DNA of 64,000 bases from Phallusia mammillata. Its lineage: Eukaryota. Under the pieces are notes generated by a model that saw only the letters and a list, made by a program, of their open reading frames with translations, made no database searches and was not told the origin of the DNA. Positions 4,950 to 25,479 of this stretch are shown here, one piece after another. The stretch covers positions 13,640,001-13,704,000 of the forward strand of contig OZ281494.1 in the NCBI GenBank assembly GCA_965637545.1, in the 5' to 3' direction. Numbering within the stretch: the stretch's first letter is position 1; each line of letters opens with the position of its first letter. Position numbers and translations under genes: made by a program.

Positions 4950-7900
4950 ATGGAGAAGTTATGCTGTTATGCGGTTTTATTGCTGGTTTATTGCTGTACA
5001 GTAACAGTAACAGGTAAGCTGCAACTGGTTATTACCTCTAATGTGTATTGGCAGACACGTACGCGATTTCTTGTGTGTATGGGTATACACCAGGGGTGGG
5101 CAACCTTTGTTACTGTAGGGCCAATTATAAATGTCAAAATTGGATCGAGGGCCGCACATGTTCATCACACAAAGTGATTTGGCTTTGTTTCTTACCAAAT
5201 ATGCTTAACTACAAGTATAATTCGTATTTGATTCTAGCCACATTTTGCCAGATCGCAGAAAACTAGCATCAGGCGCATTAATCAGCTCAAAAATATGTAA
5301 TAATTGGACTCGTTTGCCAGCACTTTTGAAATCCAAGCGTCTCTGCGGGCCGCAAGAGCTTTAATGAAGGGCCGCATGCGGCCCGCGGGCCGCAGGTTGC
5401 CCACCCCTGGTACACTGTAAAAAATATTCGTAAATTTTACTTACGAAAGCCGTTTTGTTTTTACGGTCGACTCCGTAGTCCAATATTTACGCATTTTTGT
5501 TGTAAATTACCTTTTTCTAATTGCGCTGACCAATAGCATTGCAGTATGCCGTCACGTGATCTTAATGTGGTGCATGCTGCTGCCTGCTGCTGACAGAGGA
5601 CAAGAGACAGTTGTTTGTTGTTCAGCACAGCTAGTCATGATCAACAGGATCATCTTGTTTAGAAACCAGTCTGGTTATTGGCGCAAAATGAAGCATAGTT
5701 TGCAGACAGTTGTTAAAATGTTTTGTATTGCAGTTTTTGTTGCAAATCAATGTCTTAATATTGTAAGTTAAATGGAATCGAAATTTGTTTGTGCGTTGAG
5801 CACATGTGAAAAGGAGTTTGATACTATTAATGAAATCATAAAGCATATAAAAGAACATATTCGAAAGGGGTATAAAGTTAAGTGTCCGTATGTCCAATGC
5901 GGGCGATCATACACTGTTGTGTCATCTTTTTCTTCTCATCTAAGTCGCTGTCACACTCCTAGTCTCAGTTCCAGTTTAAATAATTCAACCCATAGCTTCG
6001 AAGTTACGGAGTGCGAAGACAACGTTTTAAGTGTTCCACAGCAAGTAATTGAGGTAAACGCACACATATCTGAGCCATTTACTTTTGAAACTGCTTTGAG
6101 ACATCAAGCTCTTTTGTACTCGTTTCTTCAAGAAAAACTGCTTATTCCTAAAAGTACTATCCAGAAAATAATTTCGGAAGTGCAAACTATTTATGGGGAA
6201 GAAACTAAAAACATAAGAGATGCTGTAACTTTAAATTTACAACAACATAATGTTGGGGAAACCATTGTTAAGGACATTTTTAAATTGTTTGAAGATAAGC
6301 AGTTTTCGAAAAAAATGTATGGAGATGATGGTCCTTTACGCTCTTCGTACCTGAGAGAAAAGTACTTTACATCATCGTTTGTTTATGTTAAGCCCCTGTC
6401 TTTGAAACTGACAAAGTCATTCATTGAGGTAGCAAGATCATTCCAGTATGTCCCAATACTTAAATCCATTTCAGCTATGTTTAAAGATTGTTCTGTCCGT
6501 CATGACTTTACTTTTCCCAAGGTTAACAAAGAGTATTCAGATTTCACTGATGGATTAGTAATTAAAAACCATCCCCTGTTTAGTGGTAATTCTCAGACAA
6601 TTAAAGTCATTCTTTATCAGGATGCTTTTGAGGTTACAAACCCCATTGGGCATGCAAAAGGAAAACACAAAATGCTGGCTGTGTATTACAGTCTGGGCAA
6701 TTTGCATCATCATCACAGATCAAGTATTGACTCAATACAGCTTGTTTTGTTATGTAATGAAAAATATGTCAATGAAGACACCCACAGATCTATTTTTGAA
6801 CCTCTTGTTCAGGATTTAAAAATTCTTGAAACTGAAGGACTTGATTTGGGTTTTCCAGTTAAGACCAAGGGAGCATTAGCGTTCATCTGTGGTGATAATT
6901 TAGGAAGCCACTGGCTTGGGGGGTTTTCTACCAACTTCAGCTCCAGTGAGTACATTTGCCGATTCTGCTCATTGAAAAGATCTTCTTTTCACAGTGACCC
7001 ATTTACACAATCATCAATTGTAACCAAACAATGTTACAACTTGTCTGCTCAAGATGGAAATAATAGTTTGTGTGCTGTAAAATTTAACTCTGTATTTAAT
7101 GAATTATGTTATTTTCATGTTTGCCAGCCAGGTTTGCCACCTTGCATTGCACATGACCTTTTTGAGGGTGTAGTGCAGTATGATTTAGCATTGTACATTA
7201 AGTATTTTATCAAAGAAGGCTGGTTCACTCTATCTGAGCTGAATCAGCAAATTCTTAAATTTCCCTTCAGAGGAAGTGACAATACCTCACGTCCAGTTAC
7301 TGTAAAGAAGTCATTAAATAAGTTGGGTGGAACAGCTTCTCGTAACTGGTGTATGATCCGCTTTTTTGCTCTATTGCTGTTAGATTGGGTGGTAGACTGT
7401 GACAATATTGTGTGGCAACTAGTTTTACTGCTACATTCAATTGTTGATTTAGTCTGTGCTCCGTACCTTCCACGCAGTGCTTTATCAGCATTGAAACATT
7501 ACACGGAAGATTATATTGATCAGCGTTGCGTTGCTTTTCCTGATATTCGTTTGAGACCTAAACATCACTACATGCAGCACTACCCATGGCTTATACTACA
7601 ATTTGGTCCCCTTGTTCATGTCTGGACCTTAAGATTTGAATCCAAGCATTCTTATTTCAAGAGAATAATTCGTGCCTCTAAAAATTTTATCAATGTTAGC
7701 AAAACTCTTGCAGAAAGCCATCAAAAGTTGCAAAGTTATTTGATAGAAAAGGGAATCTTTGGACAAGACCTAACAGCTGTCTCTTTTGACTGTACCCATT
7801 TTTCTGACGCTTTTGTAGAAGCTTTTCGCAACTCTCCATTTGTCCTTGTCGATTGCAGATTTTACAAAAGCATTGCATACAAAGGAACAGCATACAAACT

Positions 7901-10900
7901 AAATCAATTTGTATTATTAAAGAAGCGTTGTTTTGATTTTGAGGTTGGCATGGTTAAATTGATGTTTCAATATAAATCTTCCTATTACTTTTGTGTAAAC
8001 AAACACATAGCTGTGTATATTCCCCAACTTGGATTACATGTTTTAGACGAAAAGTGTGTAACTAACTGTTTTGTCAGTTTGGAAAGCCTTCTTGACTTTT
8101 ATCCTCTTAACGTTTATAAAGTTAGCTGCAAGACGTTGTTATGTTTGCATCATGCAGTTTTTTAAATAATTTAAACCTTTTTTAGGGGGCTATAGATTAA
8201 AAATGGAATACGATTTTGGAAATGTTTTGCCAAACATAAGTGAGCAGCAGATTTTGTTGCTAAAACAAACACTTACAGACATTGGTGTAGAAACAAAAGA
8301 TGATTTGTGTGACGTCAGAGAAAGTGACATCACTCATGTGGTAAAACCGATACAAGCAAGAAAGTTAATTAAAGCCTGGCAAACTGGTAAGTACAAAAAC
8401 AAGTAAGCCAATATTAATAATGTTGCCTATGTTTATGGATACTCTTACATGTATCTACAGTCTCAGACGAAAGTGTGTCATCAGCTACAGATCAAGTAAG
8501 CAGCAGCCCAGAGTCAGATGTAAGCTGTTCATCCAATGAAGTTAATTGGATACAATCATTTTCTATTCCCTGGCACAAATTTCCCAAAGTAGTTATTGAG
8601 AACTGTATGAACGAAGTTTATCCTAGTCCTGCTGTCAGGAGAGAAGTTATTAAGTTAACTGTTGAGGAAATTTTTAAATATACGAAACGACCTGGAAGAA
8701 AAAACCTCGAAGTTGTTGCTCATAATATTGTTAATAAGTATCCCAAATCATTTGAGGATAACATTGATGGGGTAAGAATTGGAAATGGAATCGAATCGCT
8801 CACCAATCAGTTGGTATATAAAGTAGAAAACGAAACAAGGAAGGAAAGGAAGTGGCTGAAAGAATTTAAACTTGCAAAAGTAAATCCTGAGGATGAAACC
8901 TGCAAAAAATGGCTCCAAAATGAGTTTATTACCAGCTCTTGCATGCAGAATAGAAGTAAAGTCAAGGAGTATATGGATAGAACCTTTAATGAGCGCCAGG
9001 ATGATATTTCCAAGAAAACTCTGGTTTCAATTTTACACTCAAAATGGCCTTTTATGTTTGAGGAAGAGTTCATTTACTCAGACTACGAAAAGATTGTCAA
9101 CCTATCAGATTGTAAAACCAAATTGATAGAAGTCTTAAATGAGAGATCCATAAGAATATTCAAGTAAGCACACAACCTAAATGTACTCTATTGCTTTAAA
9201 ACTCAGTGCATTAACTCGTGTTATGTTCTACTTTGTTCAGAATTCTGAAACATCTAAATCAATCCAAACCAATCCATATCCAACGCATTGTTTTTAAATC
9301 AATAAAGGATGAATGTGAGCTGCTTGAAAACCAGTTACCCAAAAAAATGCGCTTTTTGGAAGTGCTTGCAGACTACTTTAGTGAAAATATTGACCACGTG
9401 TACAAAACATTTCCAGTAAGTTGGTATAATGTTTGGTTTGTGAATACAAATAAAACACCTGTCATTGTAGGTCCACAAGTCTTTGGAAGAAATTGTGGAA
9501 ATAATTCCAAACACACCATTTATGATCATTATGGGTATGCATATTATTTATTTATTTACTATTACAGTTTTTGCTATCTTTTTTACCAGAAAAAAGTTAA
9601 ACGTGATAGTTTTGTGTATTTTATAATGGTTCTTGGTACAAAAGTACGTGTAAGTTTTTTTGGGGCAGGCTACTGCAAATTTGATTGAATTGTATCTTTG
9701 TAGGGCAGGGGTCACCAAACTACGACCTGCGGGGTTATTTCATCTGGCCCGCGACCGTATTTTTCGATTCGCCAAATCGTATTAAACTTTGTAATAGCCA
9801 TTTATTCCTTACAAAAGACTTCCTGCAACGACATATAGAAATAATTTTGCCTAGTCCAATGGGATTACAACACCCATGTAAACTATGCCGTACTCGCAAT
9901 TTGTTATTGAACTTATCCGGCGGGCAAAAAAATTTGGTGACCCCTGTTGTAAGACATGATAATTTGCCATGTTTTGGATGTATATTAAAATTAATAAAAA
10001 AATTAATACTTATTTAGGAAATTCAACTGCTACTGCTGATAAGTTTGTTGTGTGCATTGAAAGACTGACGGTGGCAAAATTCTCTAACTTCTGGGAAGCG
10101 TTTTCATATATGTTTGTCTGTTTTTATGTGCTAAACATGCAATATCCACATCACGCAGCTGCAACATACGAATTTGTTCAAAGGTAACAAAGTATAATGC
10201 AAATAGAAAGATGTTTCATAACTTTTTACAAATACACTATGTGATTTAGTAGGAAAGATCATAGCTACATTTCGACTGTCTAAAGCTGTTTTTGTATTTA
10301 TCTCTTTTCAGGTTCTGTGCTGAACTGAATTTCTCCAAAACAAAGTTAAAAACAAAGGCCAGTCCAAAAGTGCTAACGCTGGTGAAGGCTATGAAGCGAT
10401 ATGATTCAGTGCTTTAAGCCTTTTGTGCATAAACCCTTGCATTAGGATAAGCCTTTAGTATGTATTTTGGTGTTGCTTATTCGTTTATGTAAGGTGAGAT
10501 ATGGGAATTGTTTCCTGTTTACCATTAGTGTATAGCCTGAATTGAGTAAAGTGGCCGGCTGACTGGCACGGCTTCTGTGTACATGTAAATTCTGTAAATA
10601 TGTTGGTCTAGGCTGTGATACCATTTTTGGTGGGGTGCATTACCTGACATTCAGCAAAAATATTTTTTTATTGAGTTTTTGTGTTTTCAATGTATAAGAT
10701 GGGCCTAATTGTTTTTAGATAGAGAAAAGCAAAAGTTTAGAAATTATTTTTCGCTGTTAAGCTGCAGTGATTTCTATCACTATTAAAGTACTTGGTCTGT
10801 TATTTTGGATTTATCTATTGTAATCTTAAAGAGTTTTCGGAACACTGCCTTTTCTGCGTAGTTTTGCTGCACATCAGTATCCCTGATCGTGTCGTTTAGT

Positions 10901-13900
10901 TTTGTGTGTCACTTAAGATAATATGAAAAGTGTAATGTATAAACTTGCCCAATTCCAGCGTTTTTGTGTTCGAAAATTATGTTACTCTCGATTAGTTTTG
11001 ATAATACTGCCCTAATTGTTCTTACTCAAAATGGATGAAACATATTTTGACTGAGATTGTAGGATAAGTGTTTTTTCATTGCTAATAAAACACTGGTTTT
11101 CTTTTTTAAGTGCATTTTGTGTAAAATCTACTGGAAGCCCGAGCTTGTTATTTTAAATCTACTCCGAAAATGAGCAATTTTACTCCAGATATCAGTAAAA
11201 GTACGTATGTAAGAAAATAAGTTACCTGTAAATTTTACTGGCACTTACAGTAAATTTAAAGGTAAACAAAGTGATTCAACCCGTGATTTTTACGGCAGTT
11301 TACGTAAATTTACATTAAACAACAGTAAAAATGCACTGTAGAAATTACCGCGTTATTCCGTAAAAACTGCTGCCAGTCCTTTTGCAGTAAATTTTACCGA
11401 AATTTTTTTAACAGTGTATACACTGTACTATACAACAAGCCGGAAAAAAGGTTAATGTGTTGAGTAGAGAAATAAGTCAATTTTCCGAACAAAAATTGCA
11501 AACATAAATTACACAGTGCAAATTTATCTGCAAGCGTAGTGCGCTAGTTTGTATGTAAGCATTTAAATAAGAATTAGTATTCTCTCCGCAAGTCATATGG
11601 TTTCTATTAACCAAAACTTTACACAGTCTTCCTCATTTTAAATTCTCGTTCCTGGCCATCCTTAACTGGTTCTCAAAGCGATTACAATGGTTCATTTTTT
11701 CCCTTCGTCATGCATTAGTGCTGTCGCAAAATATTGCACTCACGTTTCCCTTAACAACCCAATCCCTAAAGAGCAATAATATAAATTTGTTTAGACCGTG
11801 GTTAGATCATAAAAATTTGCATTTTAGCAAAAAAAACATGTGTTTCGTAGTGGATAGGTGTATTAGACTAATTAAAGTGATGGATTTATCCCAAACTTCA
11901 AGTATTTATGTATAGAGCGAAACCGTTGTAAACTAATTTCCTTTGATCTGACAGCTCGATGGTGCACCAACTCGACTTCAACATGCCGATTTCCATTTTC
12001 CTACAAGGGCCAGTATTACGAATCTTGTAAAGAAGAAAATACAACTTTCGCTTGGTGCTCGCCAACAAACAGCTTTACTTCTGATCCAGTGACATCTGGT
12101 ATCCGTTGCTACAAATGCCAAGGTAACGTTAATTCAATAATAAAGTATTTCCTCATTTTAACTACCGTATGATTGACGCGATGCATAAGCAATGAGAAAA
12201 CTTGGTAGACCAAATATTAGTTTCAACAAAATTTTGAGCTCTTCCGGCAGTTTTATTTTATTTTAATATGCCATCGTTTCGATGTCCCATACGAAACACC
12301 TTCATCAGGGCATTGCAAACACATGTTATTATAAAGCGAAAAGTGGGCGAAACACCCACACAAAAAAGGGCGATAGAAAAAACGCAGTGCGCACCAATGG
12401 TCGAGTGATAACACCTGGCTCAATGGTGCAAAAGCGACCGATAAGTTATCGGCATTAGAACGTCCGTTTTAACGTTCATCGTGTTGGTGTGAGAATGTAT
12501 GTTCCGCGAATCCAGGATACCTCGCTTGTGAAAATCGGTTTCTCTCGCTAACACCTGGGCAGCTGAGAAGTTTATGGTGTGACCGAGGACAGTAGCATGT
12601 TGTGATAATGCCGATTTTTTAGCATCTTTCTTGGCTACATCCCTTTCATGTTCTTTACGGCGCGTATTCAGAGATCTTCCCGTTTCGCCAATGTAAATCT
12701 CCTTGCACTGTCGACGTGGGATTGCGTACACCACACCCCTTGCCGCGTTTGTATCAATGGGGTCTTTGGGGTACGACAGCATCTGACGTAGGGTGTTGAC
12801 TGGTTTAATCCCTACTGAGACCCCAAAGTCGATTAACATGCGACGGATTATGTCTGTTAACTTGGGAATGTATGGCAAGGTAACAAAAGTACGCTCTTTG
12901 GACTGAATCTTTTTCCACCCGTGGTTTTTCGGTCACGGAGAATCCAGTTCGGGTAGCCATTTAACCGCAGGGCCTGGTGTACCCTTCGTAATTCGGTTTG
13001 GAGCATTCCGGGTTCTGTGGTCAACCTTCGGGCCTGATCTGTTAGCGCTTTCACCACAGCTCTCTTGTGGTGTAGAGCAGGGCTTCTCAAACTGTGGGTC
13101 GCGACCCCATTTGGGGTCGCGGAATAAAATTTTGGGGTCGCGAAACATTTTGCGGTATTATGTCAGTCATAATAAAAGGCATATATTTATTGTTTACATA
13201 TCATTCCCGTGTAGAAGCTATACAAGGGGTGCACAACCTTGCGGCCGTACAGAGACGAGTTTGTGCGGCCGTACAGAGACATGTTTATTAGAATATATGT
13301 ACTGGCGGCCGTGACGTAAATAAAACCTCTTTTGTCAAATATTTTTATTTTCAAACTGCTCTGAACACATTTTGTGGTGCTCAAAAGAATGTTACCATCC
13401 TAGTAGCCATATGCGCCAGACTTTAGTATGCCTATTGTGTGCAAACAATGCGAAAAAGCAGATACCACAAGCGTCACAATGTAGATTATGACGTCATAAA
13501 AGCTAAGACTGGCAATTTGTGTATCAATTTAGATATTAATTTAGGCTTTTTAGGAGCCATTAGATGGTATATAATATATAAGTATTTCTTTAGATGAGTA
13601 ATTTTAAAACACAAGCAAGCAGGCAATAAGCGGCCGCTGGGGAAATAAAGATCTGTGATGCGGCCGTCATAGCGAAAAGGCTGTGCATGCACGCCTGAAC
13701 TATACCCATCAAGGGGTCGCGTACAAATTTCTGTTTTAAAATGGGGTCGCAGAGCAAGAAAGTTTGAGTAGCCCTGGTGTAGAGGATGGTGAGACGTGAA
13801 ATGCAAGTAGCGCCTGGTGCTCGTTGGTTTGTGGTACACTTGCGTGGAAAGTTTCCCGTCTATTGCCAGTAATACCTCCACATCCAGAAAGGGAAGCCGG

Positions 13901-16900
13901 TTGTTAGTTTGCAATTCCATGGTAAATGCGATTCCTTGTTACACGTTGTTTAAGTGATCTAGAAACGCTTAAACCTGGCTAATATTGATGATGCAGAATA
14001 CGTCATCCACATATCTTTGCCAGAATCGTGGTGGTGTGGTAAACGTTTGGAGAGCACGTTCTTCCACCGACTCCATGACCATATTGGCAACTACCACCGA
14101 CACTGGAGAGCCCATTTTGGCGGATGCATGGCCGTGCCAAATATTAGTTTATTTATAACGTATCTTCACGCGACTTTTTTAATTTTGTTTTGGATATAAT
14201 TTATTACGTATTGTTGTTGCATCCGCCAAAAAGTCGATGTCCAAAAATGGAAGTTTGTTTTTAACACCAAGTTAAACGTCTAAAGCAGGGGTGTGCAACC
14301 TTTGTCACTGCATGTGGGGCCAAATAGAATTACCATGATTAGATCGCGGGCCGCACCTTCATATTACACAAGGTGATTATATACTTTGTTGCATACCAAA
14401 TATGCCTATACTGAGTTAACAAACAAAATTGGCATTTGATTCTCGCTGCATTATTGTCAGGTGGCAGAAAAAAAGCACCGGACGCATTAATCTGCTCAAA
14501 ATGTATAAAAATTGGACTCGTTTTCCATTACATTTAAAATCCAAGCATCTGTGCGGGCCCAAGATTGTACACCTCTGGTCTAAATTATAAAAGTACTAAA
14601 TCACTTACACACGAAGTTACCAAACGATATTGATCTTTGCAGACGTGTGTCAAAACGGCATCTGCGGTTCGGGGTATCAATGCGGATGTCCCTTCGACAA
14701 CAATCCTGTACGTCACCAGGGAGGGTCTACCAGCTACTCGGCTCTTGCTCAATGCATCCCTCGAAACTGGGTGTGTGATGGAGTGGCTGACTGTCGTGAC
14801 GAAAGCGACGAACTGTATTGCTCCGCCTGTGCTCCAGAACAGTTTCAGTGCGGCTGCAAATTTCCATCAGAGCGTTGTGTGGGGGGTGCTGGATGCTTTT
14901 TCAAAGGAAAATTGTGCGATGGCAATAACGACTGTTTTGACGGTAGTGACGAAATGGGGTGTGGTGTACCGTTTGATTGTCCGTGTTTGAAAGGGGACAC
15001 GAACTGCCAAGCAAAGCCACCTCAAATTCCTATCGACTACTTCTGTGACCGGAAACCTGATTGTAGGCATGGAACAGATGAACTTAATTGTTTGTGCCCG
15101 TTAGGACAGTTGCAATGCCCAGGTGTCCTTTCTTTGAAATGCATTAAAAATGCATTCTTCTGCGACGGTCAAAACGACTGTGACGATTGGTCGGACGAAC
15201 AAACATGCCAGAGTTGCCCTGCAAATACGATTCAGTGCCCTTGCTACCAACCTGGTAATATTACCTGTACCCTTGCGTTTGGGTGCATACAACCATCACA
15301 AGTCTGCAACGGGGTAAACGACTGTGGCGACGGTAGCGATGAAAACTGCACGTGTCCTAGAGGTCAAATGGATTGCCCTTGTTCAGGGTCCCAATGCCAG
15401 CCGGGTACAAGGTGTATGCCAGTTGATGGTATTTGCGATGGCCTCGTTAGCTGCGACGATGGTGCTGATGAAATAAATTGCACCTGTCCCGTGGATAAGT
15501 TCACATGCAATTGGTATTCCGTTTCGAATCTATCCAGTTTCTTTGATAAATACGGTTGCGTAAGTGCGGGTTACCAGTGCGACTTGTTTGACGATTGCTA
15601 TGATTGGAGCGACGAAATAAATTGTAACTGCACAACCAGCGAGTTTGAATGCGCATGTGGACGCAACCGTTCGTGCGTGGACACCCCTGCCTGTATCAAA
15701 AGGAAGTATGAATGTGACAACTTTGATGATTGCCTTGACCTAAGCGACGAAGTAAATTGTCCCTGCCCTTATGGCGAGAAAACTTGCAATGGGGGATGTA
15801 TTCCTAAAAACGAAATGTGTAATGGAGTGACAGGTTGTCCATACCCTGATGAACTCCCACAATGCCAGTGCATTTCTGGACATGTACCTTGTCCTGGTTT
15901 AGACAAGTGTATTTTCAACAAATGGTTCTGTGACGGCGATAACGATTGCGGTGGATGGGAAGACGAACTTAACTGCACCATTGATCCTAACGCATTTATT
16001 TGTAACTGTTCAAACGACAGAGGATATGGGTGTAAGAAGATATGGGTGAATAGACAGCACGTATGCGACGGTGTTAACGACTGTGGGGACTCGAGTGACG
16101 AGTTTGGTTGTCCGTGTGCAGGACCAAGGTGCAGCTGCATCACAGAACCCAATTCTTGCAATAGTCCCTGTGTTGACAAGAAAATACTTGTAGATGGGAC
16201 GAGGGACTGTTTTGATGGTAGCGATGAACCGTGCGTAGTAACCGAATACACGCCAACAATCAAAACCGCCAGATGTGAATCATTGCAAACCGCCCATACG
16301 TTCAAAAACTACGAGCAACTTGCAAGACAACGAAATTCGACATGTACTTTTGTTGTAACAGACAGAAACAACCAGACCGGCGTGTGGGCTTGTATTAATG
16401 ATTGTGGCGTAGCGCAAATGAGCTGTACGATTCCTTTTCAATGTCAAAGTGGTGAATTTATACCATTGTCAGCTTTTTGTGATCGCAAAATGGATTGCAA
16501 AGACGGCAGCGACGAAAATCAACCGAACACCCTTGGATTTAAATGTGTCGGCACTTTTGCTGTCTTACCGTGCGTCCTTCCTCAATCCAACCTCTACGAC
16601 GACATACAGCATTGCAAGGACGGGTCAGATTTGTGTTTTTCCGGCGTTGGTACGAGTTGTTTTCAATGTTTACAAGATGGCCTTATGATTTCGCGTCGCC
16701 AGGTTTGCGACGGTATTGTGGACTGTCCCGATCTGTCGGACGAGTGTTCATGTAATGATCAAATTGTCTGCAACTCCGTGTTTGGAAATTTCACGTCTGA
16801 TTGCCAAACAAACCTTATGCCATGTGCCAACCTGACAGACTGCGTCAAACCCAAGACTGTCCTCTGCAATGGAATACCGGAATGCATGGATGGCATTGAC

Positions 16901-18526
16901 GAGGCATTTTGCTCTTCGTCGGGCGTCAATACTACAACGCGCACATCAGTGACTTGTGAAACCAAATACGGGACAGCGGTGGCGACAAGATGTGATAAAA
17001 GACCGGAATGCAGAGACATGTCGGACGAGTGCGTAGGATGCCCAGACCTACCGTTATTTTGCAACGACAGTTGTTGGACTTTTTATCAAATCGGTGACAG
17101 GTACTGTGATGGAGTCCAAGACGAAGCTTGGAAGTATTTGAACACAAGCACATGTCCTCAGGGTTTTGATGAACGCTACTGCCCAAAACGAAGAGACTGC
17201 GGAGACGGTTCTACTATTGACGTCAGACAGATGTGCGATGGTCTGATTGATTGCAAAAACAACATGGACGAAGCGCCGTCAAAGTGTCCGAACCGATTCT
17301 ACTGCTTGAACGGAATCCCTTTGTCAGTGGACGTTTCTTTACGCTTCAACGGCATTACAGACTGCAGTGACGGCAGCGATGAGACCGGTCTTTTCTCTTC
17401 GCTCCTGGAAATGATTGCAAATCCCTTTTTGCGCGTCTTGATCTGGCTGATGGGCATTCTGGCATGTCTGGGAAACGGGATCGTTATGGTGACCACGATG
17501 AAAAAGCTCCTTAAAATAAACTCCATTTCGTCTTTTATGCGTGTAAACCACATCCTTGTGTTAAACCTTGCTTTGTCCGATTTCATCATGGGCGTTTACC
17601 TAATGATTTTGGCGATAAAATCAGCCCAGTTTTCCGGAGAATACTGGATTCGTGACAAACCGTGGCGTTTTGGGACTTTATGTAGGACTCTCGGTTGCTT
17701 GGTTGTGATTGCCAGTGAAGCGTCGATTTTGTTTATGGCCGCTTTGACCACATTCCGTCTCGCAACTCTTCGAAAACCCCTTGCTGTCATTAAGCACAAA
17801 ATTGTCAAGCTTACTGTGGTGGTGGTGTTTGTGTGGTTAATTTCATTATTTCTAGCTCTTGTTCCGCTTGTCAACTACACTTCAGGATACTTTGTATCGG
17901 GCGTGTGGTTTCCTAATTTCTTCACGGCGTCCGAAATTGTGGATAAACAATCGTTAACAATATTGGCATCGCGCATGCAACGAACCACTGGAGAAAACAT
18001 AACGATAAATTCATGGTATCACGTGTTAAAATACATTCAGGGTCGATACACAATAAAGGCGCAGATTGGATATTATTCTGAGAATAGTGTTTGCATGCCA
18101 CGCTTTTTCTCTCGCAGTAATGATTCTTGGCATTTTTCGACGTTTTTGTTGACTTTTAATCTCCTTCTTTTTCTTTACATCGCCGCTGCTTATGTTTACG
18201 TGTACCGAGTTGGCAAAACAAAAGTCAGGTCGAACAACCAAAAACGCAATGTGTCGATGCAAAAGCGAATTGCCCGCCTTATCGCAACTGATTTTTGCTG
18301 TTGGATTCCCTTATGTGTACTAGCCTATATCAGCCTTGCTGGCGTCCAGCTGCCTTCTGAGGTATACGCAATTAGTGCTATCGTCCTACTCCCTATTAAC
18401 AGTGTATTAAACCCAATACTTTACTCTGCCACGATGGAGAGGGGATTTGGAAAAATCAGCACGGTTGTTCGCACTAAGCGTATAAATAGAAACACTACAA
18501 CTAATCAAACAAATGTCAGTTTTTAA
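4950..18526 (+). CDS. FN2 + ~20 LDLa-repeat class A GPCR (GRL101/RXFP-like 7TM) lacking LRRs; coding exons 4950-5013, 11955-12122, 14643-18526
   Basis: Exon 1 encodes a signal peptide (MEKLCCYAVLLLVYCCTVTVT, phase-1 donor GTAAGC). Exon 2 is a 168-nt phase 1-1 exon with the FN2 pattern CRFPFSYKGQYYESC...WCSPTNSF...C. Exon 3 (acceptor TCTTTGCAG, phase 1) carries ~20 CDGxxDCxDxSDE-type modules, then FSSLLEMIANPFLRVLIW and seven TM helices including LNLALSDFIMGVYL, ATDFCCWIP and LLPINSVLNPILY. Confidence 0.88.
5091..5409. mobile_element. hAT (Buster/Charlie-like) MITE
   Basis: Perfect 15-bp terminal inverted repeat (TIR) CAGGGGTGGGCAACC / GGTTGCCCACCCCTG. The left TSD is GTATACAC. The right copy is split by the EnSpm insertion (GTA...TACAC). 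Internal sequence is homologous to 14286-14577. Confidence 0.85.
5772..8165 (+). CDS. EnSpm/CACTA transposase, 797 aa, with N-terminal C2H2-like fingers
   Basis: Uninterrupted ORF. Motifs LYQDAFEVTNPIG, ICGDNLGSHWLGGF, CRFC (C2C), GLPPCIAHDLFEG, RPKHHYMQHYP and WTLRFESKHSYFK are typical of animal EnSpm transposases. It lies between the CACTG TIRs. Confidence 0.85.
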   Translation: MESKFVCALSTCEKEFDTINEIIKHIKEHIRKGYKVKCPYVQCGRSYTVVSSFSSHLSRCHTPSLSSSLNNSTHSFEVTECEDNVLSVPQQVIEVNAHISEPFTFETALRHQALLYSFLQEKLLIPKSTIQKIISEVQTIYGEETKNIRDAVTLNLQQHNVGETIVKDIFKLFEDKQFSKKMYGDDGPLRSSYLREKYFTSSFVYVKPLSLKLTKSFIEVARSFQYVPILKSISAMFKDCSVRHDFTFPKVNKEYSDFTDGLVIKNHPLFSGNSQTIKVILYQDAFEVTNPIGHAKGKHKMLAVYYSLGNLHHHHRSSIDSIQLVLLCNEKYVNEDTHRSIFEPLVQDLKILETEGLDLGFPVKTKGALAFICGDNLGSHWLGGFSTNFSSSEYICRFCSLKRSSFHSDPFTQSSIVTKQCYNLSAQDGNNSLCAVKFNSVFNELCYFHVCQPGLPPCIAHDLFEGVVQYDLALYIKYFIKEGWFTLSELNQQILKFPFRGSDNTSRPVTVKKSLNKLGGTASRNWCMIRFFALLLLDWVVDCDNIVWQLVLLLHSIVDLVCAPYLPRSALSALKHYTEDYIDQRCVAFPDIRLRPKHHYMQHYPWLILQFGPLVHVWTLRFESKHSYFKRIIRASKNFINVSKTLAESHQKLQSYLIEKGIFGQDLTAVSFDCTHFSDAFVEAFRNSPFVLVDCRFYKSIAYKGTAYKLNQFVLLKKRCFDFEVGMVKLMFQYKSSYYFCVNKHIAVYIPQLGLHVLDEKCVTNCFVSLESLLDFYPLNVYKVSCKTLLCLHHAVF
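8203..10417 (+). CDS. EnSpm second gene, spliced SAM/SAMD3-like accessory protein (exons 8203-8386, 8461-9163, 9241-9415, 9471-9534, 10018-10183, 10312-10417)
   Basis: All six exons are GT/AG-bounded and join in phase (1,2,0,1,2) with no stop. The N-terminus looks SAM-like (LTDIGVETKDDLCDVRESDITHVVKPIQARKL). The C-terminus reads FVCFYVLNMQYP...TYEFVQRFCAELN...KVLTLVKAM, as in SAMD3-like proteins. Confidence 0.72.
9706..9946. mobile_element. hAT MITE nested in intron 4 of the EnSpm second gene
   Basis: TIR CAGGGGTCACCAAAC / AATTTGGTGACCCCTG; flanks TTGTAGGG / TTGTAAGA (6/8). Confidence 0.75.
12269..12312 (-). ncRNA. Minimal type-I hammerhead ribozyme motif in the Penelope 3' region (core-variant)
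   Basis: Minus strand: UGCC-CUGAUGA-A-GGUGUUUC-GUAU-GGGACAUC-GAAAC-GAU-GGCA. Stem I (UGCC/GGCA), stem II and the CUGAUGA/GAAA core are all present, followed by AATAAAATAAAA. The cleavage triplet is GAU rather than GUH. Confidence 0.7.
13078..13776. mobile_element. hAT MITE interrupting the Penelope ORF
   Basis: TIR CAGGGCTTCTCAAACT / AGTTTGAGTAGCCCTG; perfect 8-bp TSD GTGTAGAG. Removing it rejoins ...SHHPLH-HKRAVVK. A second family member lies at 32691-33195. Confidence 0.92.
14286..14577. mobile_element. hAT MITE (same family as 5091-5409)
   Basis: CAGGGGTGTGCAACC ... TGTACACCTCTG; TSD GTCTAAAG / GTCTAAAT (7/8); shared internal sequence (GCATTAATC.GCTCAAAA...AATTGGACTCGTTT...AAATCCAAGC). 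Confidence 0.8.
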
Positions 18527-20098: not shown

Positions 20099-23000
20099 TT
20101 AACAGTTGTCGGCATATCCGAGATTGTTCATCTCCCGAGACAACTGGCACATTGCGCAACACTTGCAGCAAAGAGTCATAAAACAGTCGCTGCAGATGTC
20201 ACCCTGAAACAAACAGAATGCTCTGCGACGTTATTTCGAAACAGTAAATATATGTGCACCACAAAAGCGCTGAGGAAATTATCTGGCAAGAGTGGAAACA
20301 ACTTATTTCTTGAAGGGTGTACATCAGTTGTCGGCAAACTTTTATTACTGCGATCTGATTTTTTTTGTCATATCTGGAGGCTCACACAGCCAATAAGCCT
20401 GATCTATCGCCGTTCATAGCCTACACGAGAACTAATGGCTAAAGTTTCTTCCTTGTATATGCGCCTAAAACGTTAGTTTAATTTAGCTATCCTTTGCCAA
20501 CCAAAAATTACGCCCAATATTGTACCGCGACCCAAAGTTTGGAGACCATGCAATGTGCAAATTTGTGTTCTTTTCAATCAGCCTTTCAAAGCACCTTAAC
20601 GTTTTTGATGTATCAGGTTAAAACCATTACGTTTAGGGGAATATCGAGTGGACAGGTACAAGCTCATGAACGTATTTTTTATTTTTGTAAACATTATTTA
20701 TAACGTGGCTACTAATTTCTGTTTAGCCAACCACTGTTTCTGTTAACAACAATCTAGTTTTAGAGGCTTTATTCACACCCACAGCAAAAACAATGAAGCC
20801 CACAGCTCAACTTTGACTGCAAATTGAAAGCATATTGCAAGCAGTGTTTTGCTTTAGTACGAAATAACACTCAAGGGCATAAAGCGAAGGATAAATGTCT
20901 CAATAACTTATGCATTAAAATGTAGTTTGTTTTGACAAAAAATGTAAGCTTTGCAATACCACAGAACATACACCATAGCACATCATAAAAGTTTACAAAA
21001 GCAAAAAATACAAAGCCTGTATTGAAAGTTGTGAAATGTAAACAAAAGTTTGTGATATAAGAGCATTGGCAGTTTAACAAATACACATTAACTCACAATA
21101 TCACGCAATTCACAGTTAGTTTGAGGAATTCACAAGTTTGCACAATAAATGCCATGCCAGCTTAAAGAGTTCTGACACATTTACAAAGATTTAGGAATGA
21201 CATTTGCATACGGTAAAATTGGAGATACAGGTGTCCACTTGGCATCTGCTTTGGGCCACAAAGAAGCGCAGCTATACTTTTCATATGTCAGACATCTGAT
21301 CAGCTCCATTGGAAGTAGGTGTATGTTACGTAAATATTTCGTAACAGGTAAAATTCCAGGAAAAAATACACTAACCCAGGAATGAAGCAAGAATGATTGT
21401 GAAATCTGAAGTCTATCTGTGCTAGTGAATCGCCTGGTAAAATCACCAGATTTATCAATGAGTTGAACAGATGCATATTTGACAGATGTACAAGATATGC
21501 TTAAAAGACTTTGCTCTTCATCACTCTCTCCAACATGTACTACAAGGTTATCTTTAATTGGTTGGTCAGTTGTTACTGTGTACTGAAAGTTTATTTTGGT
21601 GCAAAGTGAACGGTACTTCCGCCAAGCGCCCTGTATTTTGCGAGCAGCAACATTTTGCTGGAATAACATTTGCTTACGACACCTAGCCAGATGTCGCAGT
21701 GCTTGTTTTTCTCTCCATACTCTTTGAAATAGAGTTGCAGCTGCCACTCTTCTAAAAATCAGTTCCTTGCGCTGTGCCCTACATAGTCTTCTTTGCAGAA
21801 TAGCCCTCCACCAACTAGCCATCTTTTTTACACTTTGTGACACCACCTTAACTCTTTCCTTGTGAAGAATTTCATACAAATCAGCACTCAAAAAGATTTT
21901 GGTCTTGCCATATTGACAGCACTTTGACATTTCCAAAGTGTCGTAGCTAAGAAGCAAACTTTCTACTAGTATCCTTGAAAAGTCTTCCGGATTTTGAAAA
22001 GCAACTTTTAGTGCTTTTCGTTTCAACAGAAAAGAAAACTGACTGCAAAACTGCTGATAAGACATTTTGTATGGAAGAAAATACCCACATATTTGAATTG
22101 TTTCTACAATTCCAGAGGACTTTAACTGGTCAACAACATGTGGAGAATCAAACTTTTTGGGCACAAGTTGCTGATTGGGTTTTATGCAGCGAATATAATG
22201 GCAGTTTGTTGTTGCCATAGTTTTCAATAAATCATCCAACGATCTTTTAAACTGAATTAAGACTGTTTGGTTCCCCTTTCCCCTTTTAGGCTGGTGAACA
22301 ACTTTGCACTCTGGGTACCTTTCCCTCACCAAAGATCGCAAAAAAACATTACCACTGTTTAACAGCAAATCAACAACCTCTGGTGGAAGCTCATCTTTGT
22401 TTTTTGGTATCAGCTGATCAGTGGTGTAACCCACTTTGCCTGCATAGTGTGACACCACAAAGCATGGCACAGTAAGATTGGACTTTCTTACATAAGTGTT
22501 CTGAGGAAAAGATTGAAATATTCTGTTCATAAGTTGTACAGGATTTGTTGACCGATTTAACCTACATTCCTCATTCAGTAGAGCAAAGAGGCTGGAATGG
22601 GGAGATTCCAGGACCTTCAGACAGGCAATCTTATCTACTAATTCGGAAATGTCCCATGATATTTCATCTGAGCGAAGTTCTTCTTGTTGCAGCTTAAGAA
22701 AGTTATCCACATAGTAATGCTGAAGTTTTTCATTTGCGTAGTTAATGCATAGTTGCTCAAGGGCATTTTGTTTGAAGCTTTCAAAACCGTATATATCCAG
22801 CAAGCCAATGAAGCTGCTTGTCTCATCTTGAGGAGCAGAAATATCACTCACAATTTGATCAACAACCCAGTGAAATATCATCTCATAAACAGACTTTTTA
22901 AGTGCTTCCAATCTAGCCTCACACTCTTGCTGTGTACATGCCTTCTTCACAATGCTTCTTCGCTTTGATTTGCGAAGCTTTCCAGCCTCAATATTTCGAA

Positions 23001-25479
23001 CAGAAATTGCCTGTACTAGATTGTTGATTGGAACAGTCATAAGGCATGCAGCATATTTCAAATGTTTTTGACAAGATTTAGTTGGGAGACATGGGTCATT
23101 AAAATTATCATTGCCCTCAAGCGCAACTTTGCCTAAGTGCATAATTGATGCTAAGACTGTAAAAATTTCCATTTGTGTTTCTGATGAAATTCCTATTGCT
23201 GACATAGCACTTTGTGTTACTTTAAATGCCGATGGAGTTTCCATGAAGTTTTCATTCCCTTCCTTTAACAATTCACTATTCTTTTCCATAGTAAATAAAA
23301 ATTCCTTTGGTGAAACATTGCTGTTTGTATTTAAATTCTTTTTTTCTGGACCATCATTATTTTCCAAAAAGCACCATTTCATTTTCTGTTCTACTGTGCT
23401 ACCATGCAACATTTGGTAAAATATATGAAAAGTTTGTTCATTTTCATTTTTTCTGGCAACTCTGGTTTTTTCAAGTAAATATGTCTGTAGTGTGGCCCCA
23501 ATGATATTTCCAGATCGATTGTATTGCAACTGAATGTACTTTCCGAATCTGCTGCTGTTGTGATTGCGAGGGGTGGCTGCATTTCCAAAGGCTTCCAAAA
23601 TTGGGTTGGAGCTTAATATTCGCTTTTCAATTTGGTGGTGTGTGGTGAATGACATGTCAAATGGAGAACTACACACAGGTTGACAACTTTCAGTTTCCTC
23701 ATTGTTGTTGCTGTCTATTCCAACATATGTAAGGTAATGCATCAGACAAGATACAGTCCAGGTTTTTCCAGCTCCACTCTCACCACTAATTATAATAGAC
23801 TGATTACTTTGTCCCATACTGTCAAGCATGTCTCTCCGGGCCTTTTCAACGACAGAAAATACATGTGCTGGCATTGCTGATAGTTCTGCTGTAGATGCAC
23901 CATGGTAGGCATGAATCATTTTTCTGCTGAACATCTCATCAACCTCTTGAAAAGGGTTAATTGCAAGCACTGTACCAGCACCTAATTTACGGTAAAACAC
24001 TCCACAATGATACATTTCTCTCAGTGAATATAACACAGCAGGTGTTGTTAAAGAAGTCATTTTTGATAAGTCTGAATGAAAATATTCCGTTTGCATGACT
24101 TCGTCGAAGCAATTCCACGATGCAATTGAATGAATGTCTCGTTTCGAAATGCGTTGCTTTTCGCTGGACAATGTGCCCACAACATACTCGCCGTTTTGGC
24201 AGACTTCGACAACTCTTACTGGATTCCAAACATCACTTGTGTGTTTTGCCCACACCCAAATACCCTCTTGTAAAGTCATTTCCATACTTATTCTGTGAGT
24301 TTCAAAAAACAGTCCAATGAATTCAAACAAATTGCATATAAAACGCCTTCCAACTTGATTTGATTTCAAAAGTACCTCCAGGCTAATTTATGACCTTAGT
24401 GCGCACTCATGCGTCACCGTATTTTTAATCCTGACGTCAAGACACAAAAATCATAAAAAACTTGTTTTTGCTTATGAACGTAAGTTTGGTGGTTTGCGAT
24501 CAATTTTTGGCATAATATTACGCATATTTGACTTCGTTTGCGTTGCTACACCCTTCTTTCTTGCTTTCTTTCTGTTTTGTCAATTACGTGTTCGTATGTC
24601 ATGCCATTGTGAGCATAACGCATTCAGGCGTTGCCCGCCAACCGAGGATAAAAATGAAACAAAACAAACAAACAAAACGCCTACCGTTTTCACGAACCTA
24701 TTTCGCACCCTTTGCAAGTAAATAGTTTGCCCGTCTGAGACTGAGAGCCATGCAATTTGTGTCAATGCTAGCGTGTTAAAAAAACTATTTTACCTGAATG
24801 CCATGAGTGCCTCTGAACCTGGATCTCATTGCCAAGTGACCCCCTGGAACACAACCAGCTGGTTCTCCGGAGCATCCAACACAGCAGTTTTCTCCCATAC
24901 GCGCAGCAATGCATGCAAAGTAGAAGTGACAGCAGAAAGTTGTCAGGCAACCTACGAATGTTAGTAAAATAAAGACATAAAAGCAGAGCCAAATTTTAAT
25001 TAGTCAAGGCAAACATTTATGCACAATAGTGAAAAAATTCGAATAACAACGGTGACCTTGAGTGAAAAAATACTTGTCCGGTTCGCTGTATGCAAGAACA
25101 CGATAATCGTAGTGAGAGAGGTTGCTAATTTTTTATATTGTTTAACTTATCTTAAATCCGACTAAATTATACGACAAAAGTCATTAATCCTGTTTCGCAT
25201 TATTTCGGTTTTCAGTCAGTTTGAAAAAGTATTGACAACTTACAGCTTTTCATATCAAGGCAACATTCACATAGGCCAGTGCTCCATCCTTTGCCATTTA
25301 TAACTGGCTGTTGGGTTACAATGGTGGTTGTTACCGCTGGTTGAGTTGTGACAACGTTCGGTGGCTGACTTGTGTACGTCACACTTTGATAAGCCTTGTT
25401 GCGACAACAAACAAATATGTTCAATTTAAGAAATCCGTTTGGCAAGAACATGCATACTTACGGGATTCACAGCTGTCAT
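20099..25479 (-). CDS. PLAC8/cornifelin-family Cys-rich protein, ~143 aa (exons 25479-25462, 25394-25244, 24951-24794, 20203-20099)
   Basis: Phase-consistent GT/AG exons give MTAVNP-AYQSV...QQPVINGKGWSTGLCECCLDMKSC-CLTTFCC...RMGENCCVG...LAMRSRFRGTHGIQ-GDICSDCFMTLCCKCCAMCQLSREMNNLGYADNC*, the canonical PLAC8 motif series. Confidence 0.88.
21181..24285 (-). CDS. MYO19: Myosin XIX-like unconventional myosin, intronless, ~1034 aa from the first ATG
   Basis: P-loop GESGAGKTWT (the KTWT is MYO19-like), EAFGNAATPRNHNSSRFGKYIQLQ, TYLLEKTRVA, DIYGFE and CIKPN are present, with three IQ-like motifs. The tail end SPILPYANVIP resembles the MYO19 tail motif SPLRYADICP. The ORF track's TTG start at 24369 is replaced by the ATG at 24285. 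Confidence 0.85.
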   Translation of the reverse strand: MEMTLQEGIWVWAKHTSDVWNPVRVVEVCQNGEYVVGTLSSEKQRISKRDIHSIASWNCFDEVMQTEYFHSDLSKMTSLTTPAVLYSLREMYHCGVFYRKLGAGTVLAINPFQEVDEMFSRKMIHAYHGASTAELSAMPAHVFSVVEKARRDMLDSMGQSNQSIIISGESGAGKTWTVSCLMHYLTYVGIDSNNNEETESCQPVCSSPFDMSFTTHHQIEKRILSSNPILEAFGNAATPRNHNSSRFGKYIQLQYNRSGNIIGATLQTYLLEKTRVARKNENEQTFHIFYQMLHGSTVEQKMKWCFLENNDGPEKKNLNTNSNVSPKEFLFTMEKNSELLKEGNENFMETPSAFKVTQSAMSAIGISSETQMEIFTVLASIMHLGKVALEGNDNFNDPCLPTKSCQKHLKYAACLMTVPINNLVQAISVRNIEAGKLRKSKRRSIVKKACTQQECEARLEALKKSVYEMIFHWVVDQIVSDISAPQDETSSFIGLLDIYGFESFKQNALEQLCINYANEKLQHYYVDNFLKLQQEELRSDEISWDISELVDKIACLKVLESPHSSLFALLNEECRLNRSTNPVQLMNRIFQSFPQNTYVRKSNLTVPCFVVSHYAGKVGYTTDQLIPKNKDELPPEVVDLLLNSGNVFLRSLVRERYPECKVVHQPKRGKGNQTVLIQFKRSLDDLLKTMATTNCHYIRCIKPNQQLVPKKFDSPHVVDQLKSSGIVETIQICGYFLPYKMSYQQFCSQFSFLLKRKALKVAFQNPEDFSRILVESLLLSYDTLEMSKCCQYGKTKIFLSADLYEILHKERVKVVSQSVKKMASWWRAILQRRLCRAQRKELIFRRVAAATLFQRVWREKQALRHLARCRKQMLFQQNVAARKIQGAWRKYRSLCTKINFQYTVTTDQPIKDNLVVHVGESDEEQSLLSISCTSVKYASVQLIDKSGDFTRRFTSTDRLQISQSFLLHSWVSVFFPGILPVTKYLRNIHLLPMELIRCLTYEKYSCASLWPKADAKWTPVSPILPYANVIPKSL

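Follow-up and report, generated by a model that had tools for sequence, protein, structure and literature searches.

The locus considered here raises the question of whether a long open reading frame (ORF) in the ascidian Phallusia mammillata encodes a G-protein-coupled receptor (GPCR) whose ectodomain combines a fibronectin type II (FN2) module with many LDLa modules and no leucine-rich repeats (LRRs), and, if so, from which kind of receptor such a protein derives. The locus lies in a stretch of 64,000 nucleotides (nt) of contig OZ281494.1 (assembly GCA_965637545.1, positions 13,640,001-13,704,000, forward strand), hereafter called the window, on which all coordinates are based. We found it to be a real, intact and expressed three-exon gene. 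It is probable, in our judgement, that this gene is an intact and transcribed LDLRR-GPCR gene derived from a type C leucine-rich repeat-containing GPCR (LGR), which has lost its LRRs, has gained its FN2 module by exon shuffling and signals by the relay proposed below.

Gene model and transcript evidence

A search with the seven-transmembrane (7TM) part of the predicted protein retrieved a public P. mammillata protein of 1371 amino acids (aa) (CAB3263492.1, UniRef A0A6F9DJ91; hereafter P0001) that has exactly the same three-exon join:

4950-5013 (+): exon 1, start codon and 21-residue signal peptide; matches residues 1-21 of P0001
11955-12122 (+): exon 2, a single FN2 module (PF00040) of 168 nt, phase 1-1; AG before, GT after
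14643-18526 (+): exon 3, about 20 LDLa modules and the 7TM domain (Pfam Ldl_recept_a and 7tm_1); AG before

The ATG at position 4950 is the earliest of its open frame and is followed by a hydrophobic leader of 21 residues and a GT donor at 5014, with exon 1 ending in phase 1. Exon 3 is contained in a 3.9-kb open frame at 14630-18526 (+). The joined coding length of 64, 168 and 3881 nt corresponds to 1371 codons. The introns, each in phase 1, together amount to 9461 nt (6941 and 2520 nt) of repeat-rich DNA. The split codons GCT (Ala22) and GAC (Asp78) agreed between the exon join and P0001. Approximately five residues differ between P0001 and the window, one of them an E/A replacement inside FN2, and the public sequence thus comes from another allele or individual.

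Transcript evidence was obtained by comparing contigs of four public sequencing runs with positions 11700-17699, a stretch that begins downstream of exon 1. The splice from 12122 to 14643, which skips 2520 nt with GT..AG borders, was present in an 827-nt contig of run X1 and also in a 603-nt contig of run X11, which belongs to a different study. It was not present in the DNA-type run X9, where coverage across the exon-intron borders was contiguous at a depth of about 100. Further, the X1 contig runs 289 nt 5' past exon 2, and starts to match at 11951, four bases ahead of the exon, because exon 1 and intron 1 both end in the 4 nt 'acag', as a 5013->11955 join would lead one to expect. Expression appeared to be low, with a contig depth of about 10 and with transcripts present in some Phallusia RNA-type runs and not in others. 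Tandem paralogues were sought in the window and none were found, only the three exons giving matches.

The first-pass annotation of this DNA, made from the letters alone, had proposed a signal peptide, one FN2 module, about 20 LDLa modules and a 7TM domain with no LRRs, and Pfam and motif counts bore out this architecture at those coordinates. Its junctions, 5013-11955 and 12122-14643, had been placed correctly according to the P0001 model, the second of them also according to the RNA-type contigs of the two studies; its reservation that the FN2 exon might not be spliced to the large exon was answered by the joint in the X1 and X11 contigs. Its expectation that the FN2-capped gene would probably be mis-annotated proved overstated, since P0001 already holds the exact three-exon model including FN2. 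The public record is structurally right, and its name, 'low-density lipoprotein receptor-related protein 1B-like' (LRP1B-like), is misleading: the gene has been misnamed, not mis-assembled.

LDLa ectodomain, hinge and seven-transmembrane domain

The protein encoded by exon 3 can be divided into the following parts, TM denoting a transmembrane helix:

14643-16231 (+): 12 N-terminal LDLa modules, residues 78-607 (Pfam, motif count)
16232-16438 (+): cysteine-containing non-LDLa spacer of 69 residues (608-676), poorly conserved and modelled with low confidence
16439-17386 (+): membrane-proximal core, residues 677-992, conserved family-wide; 8 LDLa-type modules, including several degenerate ones
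17393-17422 (+): pre-TM1 hinge motif FSSLLEMIAN, residues 995-1004, directly before TM1
17423-18430 (+): rhodopsin-class 7TM domain of RXFP/LGR type, residues 1005-1340 (Pfam 7tm_1, E 5e-16)
17888-18130 (+): second extracellular loop (ECL2), about 80 residues, where the HMMER alignment to RXFP1 splits; also delimited with AlphaFold2 (AF2)
18431-18526 (+): short cytoplasmic tail, residues 1341-1371, and stop codon

Exon 3 matched Pfam Ldl_recept_a with an E-value of 4e-76, in 11 stretches above threshold. A loose pattern recognized 17 LDLa cores, to which three degenerate ones can be added to give a total of approximately 20, and the DxxxDCxDxSDE calcium cage is complete in nine of them. Among the 12 N-terminal modules, many are a variant with seven to eight cysteines, in which an extra CxC pair stands ahead of the canonical core; this variant was likewise observed at the N-termini of Ciona relatives. 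In an AF2 model of residues 575-1005, the modules of the membrane-proximal core were predicted as small beta-hairpin and short-helix units, with a predicted local distance difference test (pLDDT) value of 80-94 and no solenoid.

No LRR was found in the protein by Pfam, nor was any EGF or YWTD propeller family. In line with this, an LRR-core pattern matched the ectodomain once, compared to 0.3 matches expected by chance, and the composition of the ectodomain is 13.3% cysteine and 4.5% leucine, the longest stretch free of cysteine being 23 residues. Sequence and model together give solid grounds for regarding the LRR domain as absent from the Phallusia receptor.

In all, 187 relatives were retrieved from Ciona, Styela, Clavelina and ENA contigs, the best 120 of which were used as homologues. 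In the hinge motif directly before TM1, F, S, S, E, M and I were each at least 90% conserved among these 120. The motif, which the first-pass annotation had taken for a hinge remnant, indeed aligns with ISSLENLLAS of RXFP1 and with FNPCEDIMGY of LHCGR, and the latter segment serves as internal agonist unit in glycoprotein hormone receptors (PMC6281744).

The Phallusia protein has seven hydrophobic helices. N1.50, D2.50, R3.50, W4.50, CWxP, NPxx(Y/F) and the cysteine pair between TM3 and ECL2 were invariant in the family, as determined over 58-120 homologues, which argues for a signalling receptor and for selection on signalling. When solved structures were searched with the single 7TM sequence, RXFP1 was the closest (E 2.7e-29), followed by LHCGR, TSHR and FSHR, with LGR4 far behind. 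A profile of the family, built from 58 sequences, gave the following ranking in the PDB, in which E-values stand in for a phylogeny against LGR types A, B and C:

RXFP1: E 8.4e-54 (186 bits), 46 bits above LHCGR
LHCGR: E 1e-39
TSHR: E 6e-38
FSHR: E 2e-36
LGR4: E 2e-23
best non-LGR class A receptor: E 5e-14

The RXFP-type character proposed for the 7TM domain was therefore upheld, RXFP1 ranking first among solved receptors whether the query was the single sequence or the family profile. Further, the AF2 model of the hinge and 7TM domain (residues 926-1371) had a pLDDT of 86 and a predicted template modelling score (pTM) of 0.82, and its 35 best matches in the PDB, found with Foldseek, were all LGR-family receptors.

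ECL2 is approximately 40-45 residues longer than that of RXFP1 and contains the invariant disulfide cysteine Cys1228. AF2 predicted it with high confidence to be structured, comprising two helices plus strands. The same excess over RXFP1 was common to all LDLRR-GPCR homologues in the family alignments. The enlargement could be a family-specific lid or a docking surface for the hinge segment.

A family with this combination has been described in ascidians. Kamesh, Aradhyam and Manoj (BMC Evol Biol 8:129, 2008; PMC2396169) reported 14 'LDLRR-GPCRs' as a lineage-specific cluster in Ciona intestinalis, which have 1-10 LDL-A modules in tandem, TM regions resembling those of the INSL3/relaxin receptors and no LRRs. 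They presented this domain organization as novel, in contrast with the snail receptor GRL101, which has LDLa plus LRRs (PMC2396169). As far as its sequence allows it to be classed, the Phallusia gene is a member of this tunicate family, carrying every feature by which the family is defined. The mention by the first-pass annotation of an LDLa-GPCR expansion in Ciona accords with that report (PMC2396169), and of the novelty it saw in the architecture only the FN2 cap stands as unusual: the LRR-less multi-LDLa arrangement is not new, having been published in 2008 and being abundant in tunicates.

In a quick maximum-likelihood tree of the family TM region, which contains no outgroup LGRs, the Phallusia gene fell into a clade of 10 rows (SH-aLRT 98) with six members from Ciona, one from Styela and one from Clavelina. 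The members of this clade share an extra membrane-proximal LDLa module. The tunicate GPCRs of this LDLa-only, relaxin-receptor-like kind, for which more than 180 relatives were retrieved, are among the largest lineage-specific GPCR expansions in ascidians.

More than 100 distinct members (P0005-P0120) came from ENA assemblies, for instance from contig ctg12895l (L002), and represent an expansion of very large size in one or more tunicate-like genomes. These were called as single long ORFs, that is, the final exon only, often beside retrotransposon genes, and they do not have the extra membrane-proximal LDLa of the Phallusia, Ciona and Styela clade. In Ciona intestinalis, about 2.4 kb separates P0004 from P0036, which are arranged tail-to-tail and adjoin cytochrome P450 genes (L001, AP043577.1, 4.76 Mb), and P0002 is on the same chromosome, a local clustering unlike the solitary state of the Phallusia gene in the window.

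We propose that the receptor arose from a type C LGR ancestor, of the relaxin-receptor type, in which the LRR domain would have been lost and tandem LDLa modules placed directly on the hinge remnant and 7TM domain. The N-terminal FN2 module, encoded by a symmetrical phase 1-1 exon, would most simply be a lineage-specific gain by exon shuffling. An extracellular ligand may bind to the acidic calcium cages of the LDLa array, perhaps with a contribution from FN2. The resulting change would then be relayed through the eight-module membrane-proximal core and the near-invariant FSSxxEMIAN, which occupies the place of the internal agonist unit of the glycoprotein hormone receptors. Ligand binding may thereby reposition the membrane-proximal modules and FSSxxEMIAN against the TM bundle and the enlarged ECL2. 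The output would be G-protein signalling, probably through Gs and cyclic AMP as in RXFP1 and the glycoprotein hormone receptors. This relay is proposed by analogy with the tethered LDLa/linker mechanism of RXFP1 (PMC4561518) and with the internal agonist of the glycoprotein hormone receptors; in RXFP1/2, the LDLa module acts in activation (PMC4561518). The presence of FSSxxEMIAN at the internal-agonist position, together with the enlarged ECL2, suggests that the LGR activation machinery was kept after LRR loss.

FN2 module, competing explanations and intron content

Exon 2 scored against PF00040 (fn2) with an E-value of 2.9e-8 and 34 bits, compared to a gathering cut-off of 22.2, the match covering profile positions 1-36 of 42. 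All four cysteines (Cys32, Cys46, Cys56 and Cys73) are present, and FPF, WC and most aromatics are kept. In a PDB search, the best solved matches were the gelatin-binding FN2 modules of MMP-9 and MMP-2. The exon was single-copy in DNA (depth about 100), although the adjoining intron 2 is a high-copy repeat. A symmetrical phase 1-1 exon is the classical signature of a shuffled module, and FN2 is classically a binder of gelatin/collagen or phosphorylcholine.

The occurrence of such a cap elsewhere was assessed in several ways. No FN2 was found in the other 119 of the best 120 homologues by phmmer or pattern scan, nor in 10 RefSeq tunicate members by Pfam, and in those members of the clade with a modelled signal peptide this leads straight into LDLa. 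At the two loci sampled, Ciona P0004 and the ENA-contig gene P0005, no FN2 exon was found in the preceding 10 kb. A word-indexed search with the FN2 region returned only the Phallusia protein itself, a result that says little since the method needs shared 5-mers. An exhaustive HMMER search with the same region over 1.84 billion representative proteins yielded 306 FN2 relatives, and none of the best 149 of these had LDLa repeats or an LDLRR-type 7TM domain. The top matches were dominated by multi-FN2 proteins, in which scores add up, while single-FN2 relatives fell near the cut-off and were mostly not among the matches listed; the absence of an FN2-LDLa-7TM protein among the 149 is thus only moderate evidence. 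A full-text literature search for 'fibronectin type II' together with LDLa and GPCR gave nothing relevant. Within the literature and sequences searched, there is moderate support for the FN2 cap being new for the LDLRR-GPCR family, and it is plausibly a lineage-specific variant of a known receptor architecture.

Several points weigh against the reading of the gene as a signalling LDLRR-GPCR of type C LGR descent with a shuffled FN2 exon. The junction 5013->11955 is supported by the X1 contig and P0001, with no joint directly observed in reads. Phe takes the place of the acidic residue in the E/DRY motif (FRL), and G-protein coupling can therefore not be assumed. In the FN2 module, the C-terminal aromatic 'xGFC' is replaced by 'SGIRC', and the classical binding pocket may be altered. 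As 108 of the 120 homologue models have no signal peptide and so stop short of their 5' exons, other members could carry FN2 caps that escape notice, and the closest homologue available is at most 44% identical. Lastly, no ligand or function for the tunicate LDLa-only GPCRs was found in the literature searched, and the members of the family are orphans.

Among other explanations, it is rather unlikely that the FN2 exon is a recent, facultative or neutral capture, that the LDLa-7TM part does the work, and that exon 2 can be skipped, its phase 1-1 keeping the frame. Such a capture would fit with the occurrence of FN2 in one gene only among approximately 130 relatives examined, with the position of a symmetrical exon between repeat-filled introns, and with the E/A replacement by which the public allele differs within FN2. 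However, in both studies exon 2 is included in those contigs that run into exon 3 from its 5' side, the public transcript-derived protein includes FN2 as well, and the module has retained its four cysteines, FPF, WC and most aromatics and passes the Pfam threshold.

It is unlikely that FN2 and the LDLa array form a ligand-capture device, the protein being a GPCR that senses collagen or matrix, lipoprotein or microbial surfaces. LRRs are the hormone-binding site in other LGRs, and their absence here would leave this task to the rest of the ectodomain, in which the acidic cage that characterizes ligand-binding repeats of the LDLR family is complete in nine LDLa modules, and the solved structures most similar to FN2 are the gelatin-binding modules of MMP-9 and MMP-2. 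In contrast, the LDLa of RXFP1/2 serves activation and not ligand binding (PMC4561518), and the FN2 module does not have the C-terminal aromatic pair of canonical modules. Since members without FN2 are the rule, this module cannot be the general ligand site of the family, and the proposed sensing role is pure inference. That the FN2 cap is itself functional, making this the first GPCR to capture a ligand (collagen- or gelatin-like matrix, tunic components or phosphorylcholine-bearing surfaces) through FN2, is quite doubtful. Were it true, it would supply the first testable ligand class for the orphan tunicate LDLa-GPCR family and would mean that an LGR-derived 7TM domain can be driven by a non-LRR, non-hormone ectodomain.

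An endocytic or scavenger receptor like LRP/LDLR, with the 7TM domain as a mere membrane anchor, is hardly credible: the large LDLa array and the public name 'LRP1B-like' speak for it, whereas the protein lacks both EGF and YWTD propeller domains as well as a single-pass TM with NPxY, its 7TM domain keeps all the class A hallmark residues, and its best structural and sequence relatives are signalling LGRs.

Read as an LDLRR-GPCR of type C LGR origin, the Phallusia gene would be a clear case of an exon shuffled onto the ectodomain of a GPCR, and a recognizable FN2 binding module on an orphan LDLRR-GPCR would be a concrete handle for deorphanization.

The two introns have the following coordinates:

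5014-11954 (+): intron 1, 6941 nt, with a transposon-like insert carrying ORFs; no Pfam family above threshold
12123-14642 (+): intron 2, 2520 nt, GT..AG, with high-copy repeats (DNA depth; joint 12122->14643)

Intron 1 contains an ORF of 797 aa (5772-8165, +), whose N-terminus is weakly C2H2-like and which matched no Pfam family above threshold, and downstream of it ORFs of 67, 230 and 156 aa (8203-9688); the insert at 5772-9688 looks like an intact transposon. In intron 2, the depth of run X9 at 12250-14300 ranged from 1,000 to approximately 46,000, compared to about 100 for the flanking exons. A weak GIY-YIG ORF on the minus strand (12420-12878; E 0.0015, under the Pfam cut-off) suggests a Penelope-like element. 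Copies of the intron 2 repeat are transcribed, and many do not have 13068-13774, the corresponding joint 13067->13775 being found in DNA-type and RNA-type runs alike. Outside the gene, at 21181-24369 (-), an unbroken ORF of 1062 aa contains a complete myosin motor domain (Myosin_head, E 2.8e-168).

Comparison with known systems

With the FN2-bearing proteins MMP-2 and MMP-9, fibronectin, the mannose-receptor family, IGF2R and factor XII, the Phallusia receptor shares an FN2 module with the C..PF..W C core, whereas none of those proteins is a GPCR. The likeness to LRP1B and the LDLR family consists of clusters of LDLa (complement-type) modules with acidic calcium cages, and this LDLa content is the only one of the defining LRP/LDLR features found in it; in place of the EGF/YWTD propellers, single-pass TM and NPxY of that family, the Phallusia receptor has a 7TM domain.

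GRL101 of Lymnaea and the GRL101-type LGRs of cnidarians and protostomes are similar to it in having several LDLa modules before an LGR-type 7TM domain (PMC2396169; PMC4079206). They keep the LRR domain, in contrast with the Phallusia receptor, which has none and carries an FN2 cap in addition.

RXFP1 and RXFP2, which are type C LGRs (PDB 7TMW), provide the closest solved 7TM domain, a pre-TM1 segment that aligns with the hinge, and LDLa in the ectodomain. They have one LDLa, a linker and approximately 10 LRRs that bind relaxin/INSL3, whereas the approximately 20 LDLa modules of the Phallusia receptor are accompanied neither by LRRs nor by a linker-LRR unit; neither RXFP1 nor RXFP2 has FN2, and ECL2 of RXFP1 is the shorter one by the 40-45 residues given above. 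With regard to the features that define type C LGRs such as RXFP1/2 and GRL101, the Phallusia receptor has no LRR domain, and the others are present: N-terminal LDLa, an RXFP-like 7TM domain and a conserved pre-TM1 hinge segment.

The Ciona LDLRR-GPCRs differ from it in their number of LDLa modules, 1-10 compared to approximately 20, and the Phallusia receptor adds an N-terminal FN2 on an exon of its own, a module unreported for the family and not found in those Ciona, Styela and Clavelina members that were examined. Both are alike in carrying LDLa on a relaxin/INSL3-receptor-like 7TM domain without LRRs, and both have the eight-module core and the FSSxxEMIAN hinge.

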